A stretch of 62,526 nt of DNA, the filler included, from Platydemus manokwari (taxonomy: Eukaryota): assembly GCA_037951405.1 (NCBI GenBank). It is 6 parts of 6 records of this genome, joined end to end, with 100 filler letters (N's around TTAATTAATTAA, not from the genome) between each part and the next. Parts side by side here need not be neighbours in the genome. Positions count along the whole stretch, not along the records: positions 53,181 to 62,526 come from JBBMOY011261207.1; 5 more parts are not named here. One strand, given 5' to 3'. Positions 53,181 through 62,526 of this stretch are shown here, piece by piece; positions within the stretch are counted from its first letter, which is position 1, and each line of letters opens with the position of its first letter. Under the pieces are notes generated by a model. The model searched no databases. It was not told the origin of the DNA and saw only the letters and a list, made by a program, of their open reading frames with translations. The translations under genes were made by a program, and so were the position numbers.

Positions 53181-53282
53181 CCAGAATCGGTACTTTTTTG
53201 ACAAAGGACATGTGGCCTGCAAACAGCCCAGATATTAATCCGTTAGACTTCGCAGTTCAGGGATTTATGGAGGAACAATTGT
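53181..53282 (+). mobile_element. Tc1/mariner transposase fragment
   Basis: WPANSPDINPLDFAV motif. Confidence 0.75.
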
Positions 53283-53724
53283 ATATATAAATTTTTATTT
53301 TAAAAAATTAAATTTTCCTTATAAAATTGTAAAACATTTTAAAATTTATTACATACTTTTTAAACATTTTATATGAAAATATTAAATTTTTATAATTTAT
53401 TAAATTCTTTAAAATCGTTATTTAAAAGTTGTTATATTTAATTATTTAATTTAAACCTCACAATTATTATTAGGAACATATTTAATATCGAACTATTTTG
53501 AGAAATATTTTACATTTATATTATTTTATAAATCATTTGAAGGAAGATCGAAATAAAAAAAACATGCGTTGAATGAGGGTTATTGGACAGATGCAATAAT
53601 CATAAAGCAGTTTGAGTAAAAACCTAAAAAAAACCATTCTGATATTAATCTTCCAAAAAATTCTAACTTTACTCAAAATATTGAAAGAAAATAAAATAAA
53701 AAATAAATGATAAATAATTATTAC

Positions 53725-53940
53725 TATCTATTAATCCACTTCTTTATTTTATTTGATAATCAAGCGTATTCAGCTCTCATAATGTTGTACAAATATTTTT
53801 GTAGTTAATAACAGAGACTTCGTTGGCACTCCATTGATAAATATTGTTGTATTGCTGATGAAAAAAGTTTTGACTTTCAAATAAACTCAAATAATTTATG
53901 CAAAACTAGAATTTGTGTGATACACTGAGTCTATGGCAAT
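53725..53940 (-). pseudogene. Eroded Ly6-like cassette exon
   Basis: TTCAG|DCHRL..*FCIN..KNICTTL*; phase-1 start like the other cassettes; GTAATA donor at 53724. Confidence 0.35.
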
Positions 53941-54289
53941 CTGAAATTAAAAAAAATAAATAGAAGATGGAAAAATGAGGAAAAATTAATAAAGAAATTA
54001 ATATTAAATTATAATAAATATAAATTATTCAAACACAATCATTCAAAAAACCAACACGATAAAGAATAATATTTTGGATGGAATTATTTTGTTGTTAGTT
54101 GAATTAACTGAATTTTTTGCATTAATTGTAACAGCTGCCAATCAAATAAAACCAATACCATAAAGCCGGAATTAAAATCAAATAATTTCAAGGGTTAAGG
54201 TTGCTGATCTTAAAATGACACATCAAATAAATAATATTCCTTATCCAACTTTAAAAGAAAAAGTAGAAAAATTAATCACGTTAATCAAT

Positions 54290-55750
54290 TAAGAAAATAT
54301 ATGACAACTTGGATGATGAAAGTATAAGCTTATCTATCCTCTACGAGTAGACTGATGCAGGAACTCTAGAAGACTGAATGCAATTAATTTGTTGGTATCC
54401 TTTATTAAGTACTTGTTGACAGGGCGTCACATCATTTTATTGGAGATTGTGAATCATGGGTTGAAAATTGATTGTTTATTACGGTGGATCCATTGTTTAT
54501 ATCGCCATCTAGGTAGTATTGAATGATCCAGATCAATTATATGAATAATTGGGTGAGATGAGTGTGGTGATTACCACGTTACGCATGTGTTAATCTAGGT
54601 TTATTTAAACTTGTATGGGAATTATAAGTGGCATTGGCTTATCTTAAAAGTGCTTTTATAATGAGCGGAGACAGCAAAATTGTACTAATGTTAAAATCAG
54701 TATTTTATCATTATATTTATCATTACAATCCCAATATCTCAATCTTAATTTAATTCGCTTATATCGTAATGTGGTAGCGGAACAATATGCCGAAATAATA
54801 TGCCAACATTGAACCGATTACTATAATTTCTATTTTTTGGACACAGTGAAGTCTCCGCCCAGAGCAACACGCTATAACAGTACCAACAGAACCTACACAA
54901 ACAACCACAATCATCAATCTTGACCTGAGTTCTTATAATGAAGTCATGGAAAATACTCGTCATTTATTAAAGATATTTATGAGAAATTTTATTCTGGAAG
55001 CATTGAGTGATTCGTTATCCCCTTTTAAACTATGGTCTTCTTTACCAACGATTTAGTCACGTTGTAACGCCTTTCATACAATCCATGGAATGCGTCTATA
55101 TAGTACTGACTGAAGTACCAAACCAACTGTTTAGTCCAACTGTGTAGAGTCAATTCTGTAATTCTAATCTATACAGAATTAAAAACATCCGAAGTCATAT
55201 CAATAGGATACTACTATCTTATAAAGATCAATTAACTACTTTAGGATGAATCACTGGACAAATTCAAAGGGAAAAGCTTTTGTTTACTTATGAACAACAC
55301 TGTTTGCCATACACAAATAACTAAATTCGTATTAACGAAAATGCCTGCAAAGTGGTAATTGAAGTTAACTAGGCAATGTGACACGTAATAATAGACATAT
55401 CAATAAAATGATGTGGAGAGGTTAGATAACTGGTTTTACTTGTCGTTTTATACAACAATCTAGGATTAACTTCTTGCTCCTGAACGCCTGCGCTTTAAAA
55501 AAAATATTGTCTTGAAACTCCGAGTATACATTTACTTAGAGAGCTACATGAGCAAGCGCATCTTCCTAGTTGACATCTTATGTCCCTTTGATGATCATCT
55601 AATTTTCAAAGGGGATAAGAGTAACCTTTCACATCATAAACCACTATGTTGGATGGTTAAGCAATATAAGCCACAACCGAACGTACCATTGTGATAGGAT
55701 AACTAGGGTCGATTCCCCAAAAAACTCTGAATTTCAAAGCTTTCTAACTT
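54290..55750 (+). mobile_element. Non-LTR retrotransposon relic with restriction-like endonuclease (R2/NeSL-type)
   Basis: RT remnants YLKSAF (~54640), SDSLSPF (~55010), FFTNDLV (~55040); NNRHI; RLE IFLVDILCPFD..TIVIG*LGS. Confidence 0.7.
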
Positions 55751-56984
55751 GATGTCACCTTCAAACATGCGAGAATCTGCTCGGATGTGACATCACCACT
55801 AAGCTGGGGTGCTACTTAGTGTAAAGGAAGTGTTAGATCTGCAAACCACGGTAAGATTCCAACATCATGGTCGTGTGATCACCTTCTAGCTACAGCATTG
55901 CAAACTCATCAGGCACTAATGTAAACTCAAGATATCGAAAACGTGGGCTTTTTCTATTCAACACCTCCCTCATCGTTCTTCGAACAATCGAGCTAAACAG
56001 AAGATGATCGGCCAGATGCAGTTTTTTTACTATACAAACCTTTGAATGAACAAAGATGATAGTCAATAAATTCGTTGCAGAATTGACCTTATTGTAGAAA
56101 GATGCGGTTGTAGTTTAAAAATAACATTGTTTGCTCATTTGATTTAATCTCTTAATGTCAACAAGCATAGATAGACTTAAAGCCTCAACGGACTTCAACA
56201 GATCGAGCCTCAAAGTTGCTAATCAGTCGGTTAATTAACCTCATAAATAATCGAAAATAAAAAAATTGCACTCGAGACTATCGCAAAACAGAGAACAGTT
56301 ATTAGAATTCCCGAAGAATCTGACGTTGTCAAATTCGTGCCAAAGGCAAAGTAGCGATTGTTGAACAAAAAACAAAGTGGAGATCCAGTACTGATGTCTA
56401 CTATCCAAAATGTCAAAGCTCAAGAGAACTCCTAATTCAACTTCTAGGAATCCAATCCACCAGTTCACTGCGCACAATTTTCTTTAACTTTTGTTTGGTT
56501 AGTCGAGTATCAATACCCTTCAAGCTTTTGATCTCATATTACTTGATTGGACAAGTTTCTCCTCGTTAACTATCATAATTTGGAGTATCAAGTATTAATA
56601 AATATTTCATTCCAGATTCAACCTTTGTATTAGCTTATTTGTATGTTGTTATTTAAATAATATTTTAACATTATTTTCCCTTCTTTAATCTTAATTGAAA
56701 ATTCTTATAGTTATGATTTTAAATTTTTATAATAGCTTACCTTAACATATCTTTTTATATTATAATTAAATTAGTAACGAACTTTAGTATTTAGTGTTTT
56801 ATAATTAAAATTGTATTTATATAATTTATATTATCTTATTTTTAATATTAATAGTTGAAAATAATAATTATTATTAAATGTAAAAATAAATTGATGCAGT
56901 ATCGCCTGGTAGTTGCATTTACTAATATTTGCATATGAAGTTTAAAACAGCAAATTTAAGTTTTAAATAATTAATAATACAAAG

Positions 56985-57230
56985 AAAATCAAATTTTATT
57001 ACAAATTTACAAATATGTCACAGCATGACAATTCTAACAAAGCCAGCAATAATTTGTTTTTGTTTAAGTATGTCAACGTGATAAAAACTTTAGACATATG
57101 TTCAATAAAATATAATTTTATTATCATTATAAATATGATGAATGAAAGTCTGTTATGAAATAATACTAGTTAGAAAATTAAAGAGTAAAATTGTAATATA
57201 CATATGCTAGGATTATAAGAAGAGAATTTT
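56985..57230 (-). pseudogene. Eroded Ly6-like cassette
   Basis: LELSCCD..CNKI remnant at ~57030-56995. Confidence 0.4.
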
Positions 57231-57370
57231 AATCGTTAATCAAGCGATATTTGACAATAATATGACTTAAATATGCATCAAATTTATGATTTATCTTTAC
57301 GAATTAAAATTATGCTAATATTTAAATTAATAAATGTGGAAATTTAATTTAATTATTAATTAAATTTTAC

Positions 57371-57613
57371 CATTGAGTCCACTTATCATTCCGTTGCACA
57401 AATCACTTGTGCAGCATACCCTCGAATCAATTTGTCTGAATTTTTAATTCCACAAGTTGACGAATAGTATTTTAATCAAATTTTGTCCTATTTAATTGAT
57501 CCACGTTACTGTCTTGATACAGACAGGACAACTGTTGTGCACTGATATTCGACTTCCTTACTTTTCACAGTTGTCGCACACAATACATTTAATATTTTTG
57601 ATAGAAATTAAAA
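57371..57613 (-). pseudogene. Ly6/uPAR (three-finger) domain cassette exon, 243 nt, phase 1-1, with in-frame stops
   Basis: AG|..IKCIVCDNC..SCPVCIK..VCCTSDLCN..G|GTAAAA; the N- and C-terminal Cys motifs are in the same frame. Confidence 0.8.
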
Positions 57614-58133
57614 CTAATTAATAATAAGAACAATAAAAATAACATATAATAATGCAAATATAATGAATAATTTTATATTTTAATTGAAATATTTTGATAT
57701 TGTCAATATTTTTGATACCCAATATCTGTATAATTGTATTTTAATAGAATTTAGGAAATGAAATGGATTGATTAATTTTTATTTTAAATCCTGGCCTTTA
57801 ACCATATACTGTAGCCGAAAGCTATGAAAATAGCATTCGCTATTTCCCTAATTATGTCTTCAAATACAAATTTGTATCATAATCCAAAATCTTTCTTATA
57901 ACGTTTCCTATTCTAGAAATAGACCAATGAAAATATCTGAAATCGGCATTAATTTCTGTTTCACGTGATTATGTGTTTCTGAATCTTGTGACAAAAAATC
58001 GTGGAGTCCCCAATTTTAAGTTTAAAATAAATATTAGAAGAAATTAGCATTCATTTAAAACATTAATTTATTTTGTCTCTTTAGGTGCTTTATTTCATAA
58101 TAATACTCTTTATAATTTATAAATATCACGTAC

Positions 58134-58376
58134 CTTTCAAATAACCTGGAGTTTTTTCGTTTCAATAATCTGTGTTCAGCATATGATTTGAGCTTTACTA
58201 AGAGCTATAACAGGACAATTTTGTAGACATAATTTTTTTGAATATTTATCATCATAATTTTTATTAACATTTTTAGTCACTGTGACACAAACAGTTTGCA
58301 TTGATTTGTATATACATTGCAATTTCATTACAATGCTGAAAAAATTTACGTTTGATTTCATTGCTCAGTGGACAAC
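58134..58376 (-). pseudogene. Ly6/uPAR cassette exon, 243 nt, decayed
   Basis: TTTCAG|GCPLSNEIK..QHC..; VCVTV..KKLCLQNCP..IIC*; donor AAG|GTACGT; internal frameshifts. Confidence 0.65.
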
Positions 58377-58717
58377 CTGAAAAAACCTGCTATATATGAT
58401 GCTAAAATACGCTGTATATATTTTATAATATTTTGTTTATAAATGTTTTGTAAATATTTTATCACCTAGAAACTTTTTAGAAAAATAAAAATTATAACCA
58501 CATATTGAATGAAAATATATCAATGAAACATGCGATTAAATGCGTGTCTCTAGAACATATATATATATTCTGCTAAATTTCATTTTTTCAAGAGAATTAA
58601 TAAAAATATAATTATATTTATTATTTTAAAATAGAATTAATTATAACATCTGAGATTTTGAATAATTTTACTGAAATATTAATAGGGCAAATTATATGTA
58701 TAAAAAACAGAAATAAC

Positions 58718-58953
58718 TGTTTTTCCCATGGTCGTTGCATTGTTAATAATTGCAACAAGAAATCTCAGCCAAATTGTTTGAATTTGTTGCTTGATAGTCT
58801 TTTAAACATGATTTATCAATTGTTATTCTATTTTCCTGATCTCGCTTTTTTTGAGTACTTTTATTTTGGTAATGACGCATATTGTCAGGATGTTTGCAAT
58901 TTTGCCATGCATCACAATAAACACTTGTTAGTTTTCATAAAATATTTTTTAAT
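58718..58953 (-). pseudogene. Ly6/uPAR cassette exon, decayed
   Basis: ..QNCK..DKSCLKD..EISCCNY*QCN followed by a GT donor; the acceptor appears mutated. Confidence 0.6.
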
Positions 58954-59023
58954 TTAGATATTGAATCAGGAAAACATTTTATTAAGGATTTCATTTTGAT
59001 CTCAATATAATCAGTGAAATTAC

Positions 59024-59284
59024 CAAATAATTTTCTAGTATTGCATAAATTGAAATTGCAGCAATAAATTGATGCTGAGGAATTGGCAATACTTTCATGG
59101 CATTTTTCAACGCATGAACTTGATATCGAAATTTTCTTATTGATTGTTGTTAATAGTGATTGTTGTTAATAATGATTGTTGTTAACATGCAAAATTTGCA
59201 TTTCTCATAAATTTCTAAAGAGGTTTCTAGGTATTTGTTAAAAACGTAATAATTACATGTAACAAATATAAAAACTTGTATAAT
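59024..59284 (-). pseudogene. Ly6/uPAR cassette exon frameshifted by an internal 16-bp triplication
   Basis: KCKFCMLTTI..SSSCVEKCHE..IYCCNFNLCN..G|GTAATT; three copies of gattgttgttaat(a/c) at 59142-59185. Confidence 0.75.
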
Positions 59285-59383
59285 CTTTAAGTATGATAAT
59301 TTAGAAATAAATACCTGTATGTTTTTGATAATATTTAATATATGTTTCATATAAGAACCCATTATTAAATATAAAACTCTTAC

Positions 59384-59626
59384 TTATTCTTCTTAAATCC
59401 TCACTTATTATGCTCAGTTACGATCAGTTACAGCAAATAATAGTTTGTTTGTTGTCAAATGGTGGTGCACAGCTAGATAAACAATATTTATTTATTGTAT
59501 CAATGTTTTTTTCAGACTTTTTATGTATTGTTGATACACAAAACGAGCAGGTTTTGTAAGTCTGTATTTTTTGTTTAGTATAGTTTTGACAAATATCGCA
59601 TGTAATTGCAAAGAATTGACAACAAT
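59384..59626 (-). pseudogene. Ly6/uPAR cassette exon, 243 nt, decayed
   Basis: TTAG|DCCQFFAITCDICQN..TCSFCVS..YCLSSCAP..IICCN*; donor GTAAGA at 59383. Confidence 0.72.
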
Positions 59627-59719
59627 CTAAAAATAAACAATTTCAATCATGTGTTTATATAAATTTCATTGTTATCAACTTAATTTAAATGATAAAATAA
59701 AGTTGTGAAATTAAATCGA

Positions 59720-60860
59720 ACTTTCTAATGATTGATTGATAAACAGACACAATGTCAAATGCGTTGTTGCACATGATAATCAGAAATTTCAGAGAACCAC
59801 CTAAAATTTAATGAATCTCTAAATCATAAATTGGTTATCTAGAAGAACTAAAACGGGTGAAAATTACATCATTAAAAATTAAACCTATGATAATCTAATA
59901 ATGTTGTAAGTAATGAAAATCACTTTGTTAAAAGTTCCCATCATAGATTTAAACCAAAAAGCGAATAAAAAGTTAAACAAATTAAATTTTAATAATTTAC
60001 TTAATAAAATATTGATAAATACAGCGCAGAGTAAAATCATTTTTCGAAGGAATATGAGAAATTCTTATCGTTGGCAATTATTTAAACATTCTAAATATTG
60101 TGTACATGGCTACATAAATAAATTCTTCACTTTGTACCATTACCTCAAGTCAATATTAAAAATAATCTGCAATACAGGCATCCATGGTATCTATTTAACA
60201 ATACATTAAAACGGTTTTGTCATTATTTAAAACACAAGAATTAAAAATTTGTTGATTTGTACAGTAGAATATGAAAAACAAAATTGTATCAATATATTAT
60301 GCAGCCACCTTGTTGAGGTTGAAACTATTGTTATTAATCAGCAAGAATTCTTTTCATGAATTATGAAAAAAATTCAATTACCATCCGTTACTTCTCTAAT
60401 GACGGTAAAGGAATTTCGATTTAGTTCTGGTACTTAACGAAAGAAATGAAACGTAAACATGTAGCAGTAAACAGTTTTGCATTTATAAATTTTATTTTAA
60501 AATTATATATTTTATAATTATATCTGAAATTTAAAACAAATAAATATGTGCTTATATTATTAATAAAAATAAAAATAAATATCATTCCTAACGTGTTAAA
60601 GTTTACATCACTTATATTTTAAATGAAAATACAAAATCAGAAAACAATGAATTATACAGGGTCAGATCTAATGTAATTAGTTTAAGTGACTTTTTTAATC
60701 CAAATCACCAATATTCCTAATCGTCCAATTAGATATCGGATACCGCAAATTTTTCTACTTCTTGCTTTGACTGTAATAACCATTGCTAATTCTTTTTTTA
60801 AAAATTACATTAATGATAGTGATATTGTCCTTATTTTTAAAAATAATCAATTAACGGTAT
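59720..60860 (-). pseudogene. Further, more eroded Ly6-like cassettes (~3)
   Basis: Remnant motifs MCNN (~59770), ATCLRF at ~60460 with Y*YNF (~60290), and KICG..SDPCN (~60750-60655). Confidence 0.4.
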
Positions 60861-62526
60861 TAAATATTTCATGACTTCTTATTCCATTTGAAATAAGTAT
60901 TTATTTTTTTATTGAATATGTTATTATTATTTAATTATCATATAATTATTATTAATGAATTATTTAATCTTTAATTTGAATAACTTACAAATTTATATTT
61001 GAAAATTTTCAATAACCATTCGTAGAAATAGCATAATTTGGAAATCTAGCCGATCTTGTATTTATTCCTTATTTCAACTTCGAATGTGCATATATTTTCC
61101 TTTAAATTAGTATTTGAGATAAAATACTTGCAAGTCAAGATTTTCATGTGTTAGTTGTTTAAAATTATTAATCCTCATAGTATGGATATAAAGTATAAAT
61201 TCTTTATTAATGTCTATTATCTAAAAATTGAAAATACTATAATCTGGCCACCATTGTTTGGGGTCATCTCTTAACAGCGTGTCAAATGCGAAAGACAGCG
61301 TCATTTAATTAAGTGCGGCGAATTGCTTGGTTGTTTTCAACCAATTTTCAGCAATTTGGATTGATAGATCGACGAACTACAGCTACGGAATCAATGACTC
61401 TTGAGTTTTCAAGGCGGATTCGAAAATTTTTTCTGATTCTCTTCTCTTTTGGCTTTCGTAAATGTATTTATCTGGACGTAGTCACAAGTTAACAAATCGA
61501 GAGTTTGCATCAATGTTTATTGTTTCAAAAGCAACACACGTATTTTTCGAATATTTAAACAAATCAAATATCTAAGATTTATATAACTTTTAAAAGCAAG
61601 ATTACTATCATTAAATTTGAAAGATTTTAGAAATTGGTTACATTTATGATAAACATTTTAAAGACAAATGTTCGATATATAAGATATCCATGAATATAAA
61701 TTTACTAACATTTAATATATTTAATAAAATATTGATTAAAATAAAAAGGATGAGATACCGAAAATGTTCACTTTTGTATACCTGATACTTCATAACGAAG
61801 GTTATTAGTAGGAAAGCTACTCTAAAATGATCTAAATAGATAATTCGGCTGATATAATAAAACTCAAAATTCATGCCCCAGACCAATATTATTTATTGTT
61901 AATCTTCCCATTAATATTAATAATATACACTGATTATTATCATTATTATTATTGTTGTTGTTATTGCTATTATTATTGCTATTATTATTATTCTAATTGT
62001 TAGTATTAATATGAAATTTTTTATTAAGACAGCATAAAAAAATAAATTAAAAACACATATTAAAGTAACAAAAAAAATTAAATATAGTAAAAGTGAGTGG
62101 AATGCGCCGGCGATATCTTTGTTAAATTGGATGTCGTCTTTTGGCCATGTTTCACGAGAGTGATTATCTATAGAGTGCGGCGCAGCCAAAAGAATTAAAA
62201 AATATGCCCATATCAATGAAAGTTCTGATTGCTGACCAGAGATAATATTAGGCCTACTTTTTGTTTTTTAATTAAAAAAATTATATCACAAATAACATGA
62301 AAAAATATAAATAAAATAAATTTAAATAATCACTTCATTTGTGTTAGTGGCTAACACTTCATTGCTTTTTATATTGTATTCGAAACTCATAACTAAGTGT
62401 AAAAATCTATTTCATATTAAAGATTATCTAAACAAAATTTCCTTCTTTAATAAATATATTAGGCTGAGTCAAAAGTTATTCATGTTTTTTAGTTGTTTAA
62501 AGTTTTTGTTTTACCAAATCATTTAA

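Follow-up and report, generated by a model that had tools for sequence, protein, structure and literature searches.

In the Ly6/CD59-like proteins of flatworms, exactly two residues separate C2 from C3 and C4 from C5, a spacing that is a signature of the platyhelminth family (PMC3812095), and one schistosome member, SmLy6D, has two domains (PMC4492491). The Platydemus manokwari locus described here resembles these proteins (SmLy6A-K, FgLy6/FhLy6 and SmLy6D/Sm29) in its C1-x2-C2, C2-x2-C3 and C4-x2-C5 spacings and in its CC-x4-CN end (PMC3812095, PMC4492491, PMC8763315), a likeness of cysteine spacing without a direct sequence match to a flatworm protein. The predicted signal peptide and GPI tail of the flatworm proteins may also have counterparts at the locus, in two candidate exons, of which the signal exon is at chance level. 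The described trematode proteins have one or two domains, whereas the locus has at least five, all of them broken.

LU domains are as a rule encoded by exon sets with phase-1 introns on either side, and such sets are repeated in LU-only proteins (PMC6600238); the multi-Ly6 genes of Drosophila encode from 2 to 44 LU domains. Together with uPAR, C4.4A and Haldisin, the Drosophila genes share with our locus tandem LU-only repeats, phase-1 introns and one anchor, a candidate at the locus (PMC6600238). They differ from it in their generic set of two exons per domain, where the locus has a single exon, and the candidate anchor signal at the locus has an exon of its own. In the medaka bouncer gene (Bncra/Bncrb), one of two LU exons is spliced to a common first exon (PMC10267171); there, as at the locus, whole LU domains lie on single exons, behind a common first exon for which the locus has a weak candidate. 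The two bouncer exons are alternative terminal exons that end the transcript, whereas the cassettes of the locus are internal, with donors, and are known from DNA alone. Clusters of the Dscam type are likewise made up of homologous exons in tandem, alike in length and phase. Their mutually exclusive splicing operates through docking/selector pairing; the locus, with five demonstrable units, has neither a docking/selector signal nor an intact cassette. Schistosome micro-exon genes (MEGs) skip symmetric exons (PMC8293314), and they resemble the locus in having symmetric exons in a gene for a surface or secreted protein, which the gene at the locus probably was. The exons of MEGs are, however, at most 36 nt long and encode no folded domains.

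We analysed positions 53181-62526 of a window of 62,526 nucleotides, joined from six parts of the P. manokwari assembly GCA_037951405.1. The DNA of 53181-62526 is AT-rich and animal-like (18-30% GC around the array); this part contains no long ORFs, and the portions of it that were searched gave no tRNA or Rfam match. Logan contigs of one sequencing run, probably the source sample, share 99% of sampled 31-mers with the stretch; this is the one run that contains it, and none is recorded as RNA. An imperfect microsatellite, (AAT)n with about 27 copies, occupies 61933-62012; a 99-codon ORF on the minus strand (61917-62216), possibly a transposon fragment, covers it and a GC-richer patch and has no credible Pfam match. 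A second small GC-richer patch lies upstream of the array at 61260-61480, with a plus-strand ORF that has no Pfam match.

The array itself had been read in a first-pass annotation as a candidate cluster of Ly6-type exons used in a mutually exclusive, Dscam-like manner. We consider it probable that it is instead a pseudogene whose GPI-anchored Ly6 product had at least five domains, the result of copying one symmetric exon in tandem. Five cassettes, labelled A to E in the direction of transcription, could be demonstrated:

59626-59384, minus strand: LU cassette A, 243 nt, AG and GT ends, phase 1-1
59284-59024, minus strand: LU cassette B, 261 nt, AG and GT ends
58942-58718, minus strand: LU cassette C, 225 nt in a single frame, donor weak, acceptor AG missing
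58376-58134, minus strand: LU cassette D, 243 nt, AG and GT ends, phase 1-1
57613-57371, minus strand: LU cassette E, 243 nt, AG and GT ends, phase 1-1, single frame

All five are in phase 1-1, and those free of frameshifts are multiples of three in length. The leader from the exon start to the first cysteine position is 27 nt long in B and 26 nt in the other four. The frame of cassette A is open up to the CC-N motif, after which two stops (59426 and 59420) interrupt it; as the last Cys-Asn of A lies outside this frame, the length of 243 nt is partly coincidental. Cassette B owes its 261 nt to a 16-nt tandem duplication (59141-59185); its frame changes there and in the leader, and its C-terminal half is intact. 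In cassette C the second C-x2-C has been lost in frame, and stops occur at 58937 and 58745. The frame of cassette D changes twice, near 58311 and near 58178, and four of its cysteine positions are altered. Cassette E has no frameshift, three stops (57560, 57494 and 57446, all TAA) and altered Cys6 and Cys7. The gaps between successive cassettes measure 99 nt (A-B), 81 nt (B-C), 341 nt (C-D) and 520 nt (D-E), and in the first of these an intact donor and acceptor face each other. The first-pass annotation was thus accurate in its three units of exactly 243 nt with AG/GT ends and phase 1-1 (A, D and E), in the cysteine motifs that it quoted, in gaps of about 70-100 bp between some neighbours, and in reporting stops or frameshifts in every cassette, which holds for all five units.

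The cassettes follow the spacing C-2-C-2-C-(10-12)-C-2-C-(18-19)-C-3-C-(11-12)-CC-4-CN. This is the ten-cysteine Ly6 pattern, beginning with C1-x2-C2 and ending with CC-x4-CN, and 35 of the 46 positions observable over the five units are still cysteine. No unit has the pattern complete, while the spacing is kept across all five, including the two residues between C2 and C3 and between C4 and C5. C2 or C3 is substituted in A to D, and C1-C3 are all intact only in E. The spacing by itself makes a flatworm the probable host. For database queries, pieces were taken exon by exon, with broken frames read with X. Against Pfam, the stop-free piece of cassette B matched Toxin_TOLIP (E 0.0019) and that of cassette D matched UPAR_LY6 (E 0.012), both below the cut-off, and the top PDB profile matches were three-finger proteins (E 0.03-0.07). 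In the Atlas, the neighbours of the C-terminal half of cassette B all belonged to the LU clan, with scores of 0.75-0.76 that serve as leads only; cassette A had none there. AlphaFold models of the pieces reached pLDDT values of 52 and 47, too low for fold searching. A profile search of 1.84 billion representatives gave zero matches, and no intact relative emerged from a word-indexed protein search, exact look-up of eight ORFs or related metagenome loci. Cassette E was the unique match in the window to a generic DNA pattern of the cysteine spacing; in metagenomes the same pattern retrieved just unrelated Cys-rich repeats and antisense frames. The identification of the cassettes as Ly6/three-finger domain exons is upheld by the cysteine pattern kept over five units, with profile matches below threshold.

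The number of units was put at about nine in the first-pass annotation. When a block profile was built from four cassettes, it recovered the fifth above shuffles every time. The scores for A to E were 40, 34, 25, 9 and 30, where the null maxima lay at 10-13, and D was the weakest (P 0.017). The same five are the highest peaks of a generic pattern of cysteines plus splice sites, whose spacing ranges were picked after the cassettes had been seen, and the pattern coincides with four AG sites. The other four claimed units (60860-59650 and 57300-56985) were at chance level against shuffles in both tests and in a further comparison; five units are well above shuffles, and the remaining four are candidates. 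In a DNA test of low power, the z of the upstream candidates (about 2) stayed below the noise maximum of 2.5, and windows near 57086-56677 reached z of 3-5.6 in very AT-rich DNA, with raw scores equal to background. The array therefore has five demonstrable units, and further ones are possible. On the minus strand, 60860-59690 and 57300-56985 contain partial cysteine motifs and good acceptors (60523, 59838 and 57165) that do not exceed shuffles; GC is slightly raised upstream of cassette A, at 60480-60260 and 59840-59700. The candidates in these two regions may be older, more decayed cassette remnants.

Two candidates for exons shared by the whole array were found:

60040-60001, minus strand: weak candidate for a signal-peptide exon, with an ATG, 13 codons (most of them hydrophobic) and a GTAAAT donor in phase 1
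54134-54043, minus strand: candidate for a shared terminal exon, with 29 open codons in phase 1 behind a CAG acceptor, then TGA

The terminal exon candidate encodes an Asn/Ser-rich spacer followed by a hydrophobic tail and the stop, in the manner of a GPI signal, and AATAAA occurs nearby at 53753 and 53748. It lies 3.2 kb past cassette E and is the only GPI-like terminal exon on either strand of 53181-62526; 0.9% of shuffles yield one, under criteria that were set after the exon had been seen. Tandem LU exons followed by one terminal anchor exon candidate in compatible phase correspond to the layout of a multi-LU GPI gene, and the shared anchor exon that had been predicted thus has a candidate. 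The signal exon candidate, 374 nt before cassette A, is the sole one upstream of A within the part, and, combined with the leader of A, would encode a signal peptide of the usual length. It is at chance level, since 2.9 kb of shuffled DNA should contain about 1.1 such candidates. If lesions are as dense as was assumed for the cassettes, the chance of staying open in a dead gene is about 0.3-0.4 for the terminal candidate and 0.6-0.7 for the signal candidate. Just beyond the anchor exon candidate, a strong T-rich AG acceptor at 53940 (minus strand) precedes a short Cys-containing stretch like the start of a Ly6 exon, with a score at chance.

Between cassette E and the anchor candidate, in the last intron and antisense to the Ly6 gene, there is a decayed transposon-like island on the plus strand (about 54200-56600, 32-40% GC; 35% over 54250-56600). 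Judged by eye, fragments at about 55550-56230 resemble reverse-transcriptase and RNase H motifs of the Ty3/gypsy type; Pfam was blank for the island, and no terminal repeat pair was found. Its insertion may relate to the death of the Ly6 gene.

Damage is spread evenly over the cassettes, and none of the five is functional. Cysteine codons have changed at 11 of 46 observable positions (1, 2, 2, 4 and 2 in A to E), from which we estimate a divergence of about 10% per site; the spread fits equal rates, without overdispersion (dispersion P 0.70). A simple simulation favoured synchronous over staggered death by about 3:1, a weak ratio. Nine of ten splice dinucleotides survive, where 8.1 are expected under neutral decay, and there is thus no sign of continued selection on splicing. 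The similar depth of damage in the five cassettes mildly favours one shared death. If all cassettes were joined constitutively into a polyprotein, one lesion would kill every domain; a cluster with mutually exclusive use can bear the loss of single cassettes and should show a mixture of intact and dead ones. DNA identity between cassettes is 56-65%, near shuffle level in AT-rich DNA, and a pool of gene-conversion donors was rejected on this account.

Prediction of mutually exclusive exons relies on equal length, phase and homology, and constitutive and differentially included exons are listed among its false positives (PMC3228551). The cassettes are homologous exons of similar length and the same phase, and their phase 1-1 symmetry is no pointer to exclusive use because phase 1 is the generic design of LU exons. 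We found no exclusion device: the joined cassettes stay in frame, the introns of 81-520 nt leave no steric obstacle, and no docking duplex, selector or common upstream motif exceeded shuffles, in a search of low power in decayed AT-rich DNA. Introns of 81 nt and up are long enough to be spliced, judging from invertebrate intron sizes. Close to their 3' ends, the two short introns contain a CTAAATT-like motif (59285-59310 and 58943-58965, minus strand) that resembles a branch point and is not significant against shuffles. The leaders do not discriminate between the splicing readings; a small residue suited to signal cleavage stands at their end only in A and C, and decay could have altered the others. 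[quoted passage not shown] On two tested features, the exclusion device and the functional cassette, the locus falls short of the Dscam-like class. The proposed exclusive use found no support as the leading account, and docking/selector complementarity in the introns did not exceed shuffles (a search of low power); the alternative that the first-pass annotation itself had offered, a dead multi-domain Ly6 gene, fits better.

It remains unlikely, in our estimation, that the array is a dead cluster of mutually exclusive LU exons, in which each transcript joined one cassette to shared signal and GPI exons and so produced single-domain surface variants. Equal length, phase and homology agree with the published criteria (PMC3228551), each cassette keeps a 26-nt leader where the tail of a signal peptide would sit, one anchor-like exon candidate is shared, the raised GC and partial cysteine motifs upstream hint at older dead cassettes, and fish Bouncer offers two alternative LU exons on a common first exon (PMC10267171). 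Against these stand the in-frame joining across introns of at least 81 nt with no docking/selector signal (at low power), the even decay, the lack of any intact cassette between the candidate shared exons and the silence of the literature searched. We give the same low credence to a multi-domain gene from which any subset of symmetric cassettes could be skipped, as in micro-exon genes but with whole domains. Its attractions are that all cassettes are in phase 1-1, with the frameshift-free ones multiples of three, that flatworms do vary surface proteins by skipping symmetric exons (PMC8293314), and that some upstream cassettes could have died early; yet micro-exon genes have exons of at most 36 nt and are reported to be restricted to schistosomes, and even decay needs no skipping.

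Remnants of tandem single-domain Ly6 genes, with their signal and anchor exons deleted or decayed beyond recognition, seem less likely still. Flatworm Ly6 genes do cluster, with four within 41 kb in S. mansoni, and the C-D and D-E gaps of 341 and 520 nt are the wider ones. The absence of an anchor-like exon between cassettes and the 99- and 81-nt A-B and B-C introns, the former with donor and acceptor intact and facing, nevertheless make stand-alone genes improbable, in agreement with the first-pass annotation. We find it hardly credible that the gene is alive and that its breaks reflect assembly errors or a non-standard genetic code. Some frame changes do fall in homopolymer runs, and in cassette E, which is free of frameshifts, the three stops are all TAA. 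However, eleven cysteine codons are substituted, the stops include both TAA and TGA, no change of code accounts for the frameshifts of A, B and D, and the stretch shares 99% of sampled 31-mers with contigs of the probable source sample. Stop reassignment of the ciliate type was rejected on the grounds of the frameshifts and cysteine loss.

A pseudogene of a multi-domain, GPI-anchored Ly6 protein could have arisen as follows. In the ancestral gene, a single LU exon, symmetric and in phase 1-1, would have stood between a signal exon and a GPI exon, and tandem duplication of this middle exon would have produced at least five copies. These copies presumably diverged while functional, because cysteine spacing and leader length were kept despite near-random DNA identity. 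Spliced head to tail, the cassettes would have encoded one beads-on-a-string protein, in which each tail plus the following leader formed a linker of 14-17 residues between domains. One inactivating event may then have ended selection on the gene as a whole; every exon has decayed since by about 10% per site. Older remnants upstream, if genuine, would imply staggered loss as a possibility.

A broader proposal, that the lineage has or had Ly6 genes that choose one of at least five three-finger exons between common signal and GPI exons in a Dscam-like way, with this locus as a dead example and live paralogues to be expected, appears doubtful to us. Under the reading that we prefer, the locus is a modest addition to the family: duplication of a single-exon LU domain into a protein of at least five domains with cysteine spacing of the flatworm type. 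The 26-nt leader, the length of about 243 nt and phase 1-1 provide an exon signature by which live paralogues may be found. If such paralogues splice one cassette at a time, they would represent a new, splicing-based form of Ly6 diversification, relevant to recognition and to contact with hosts.
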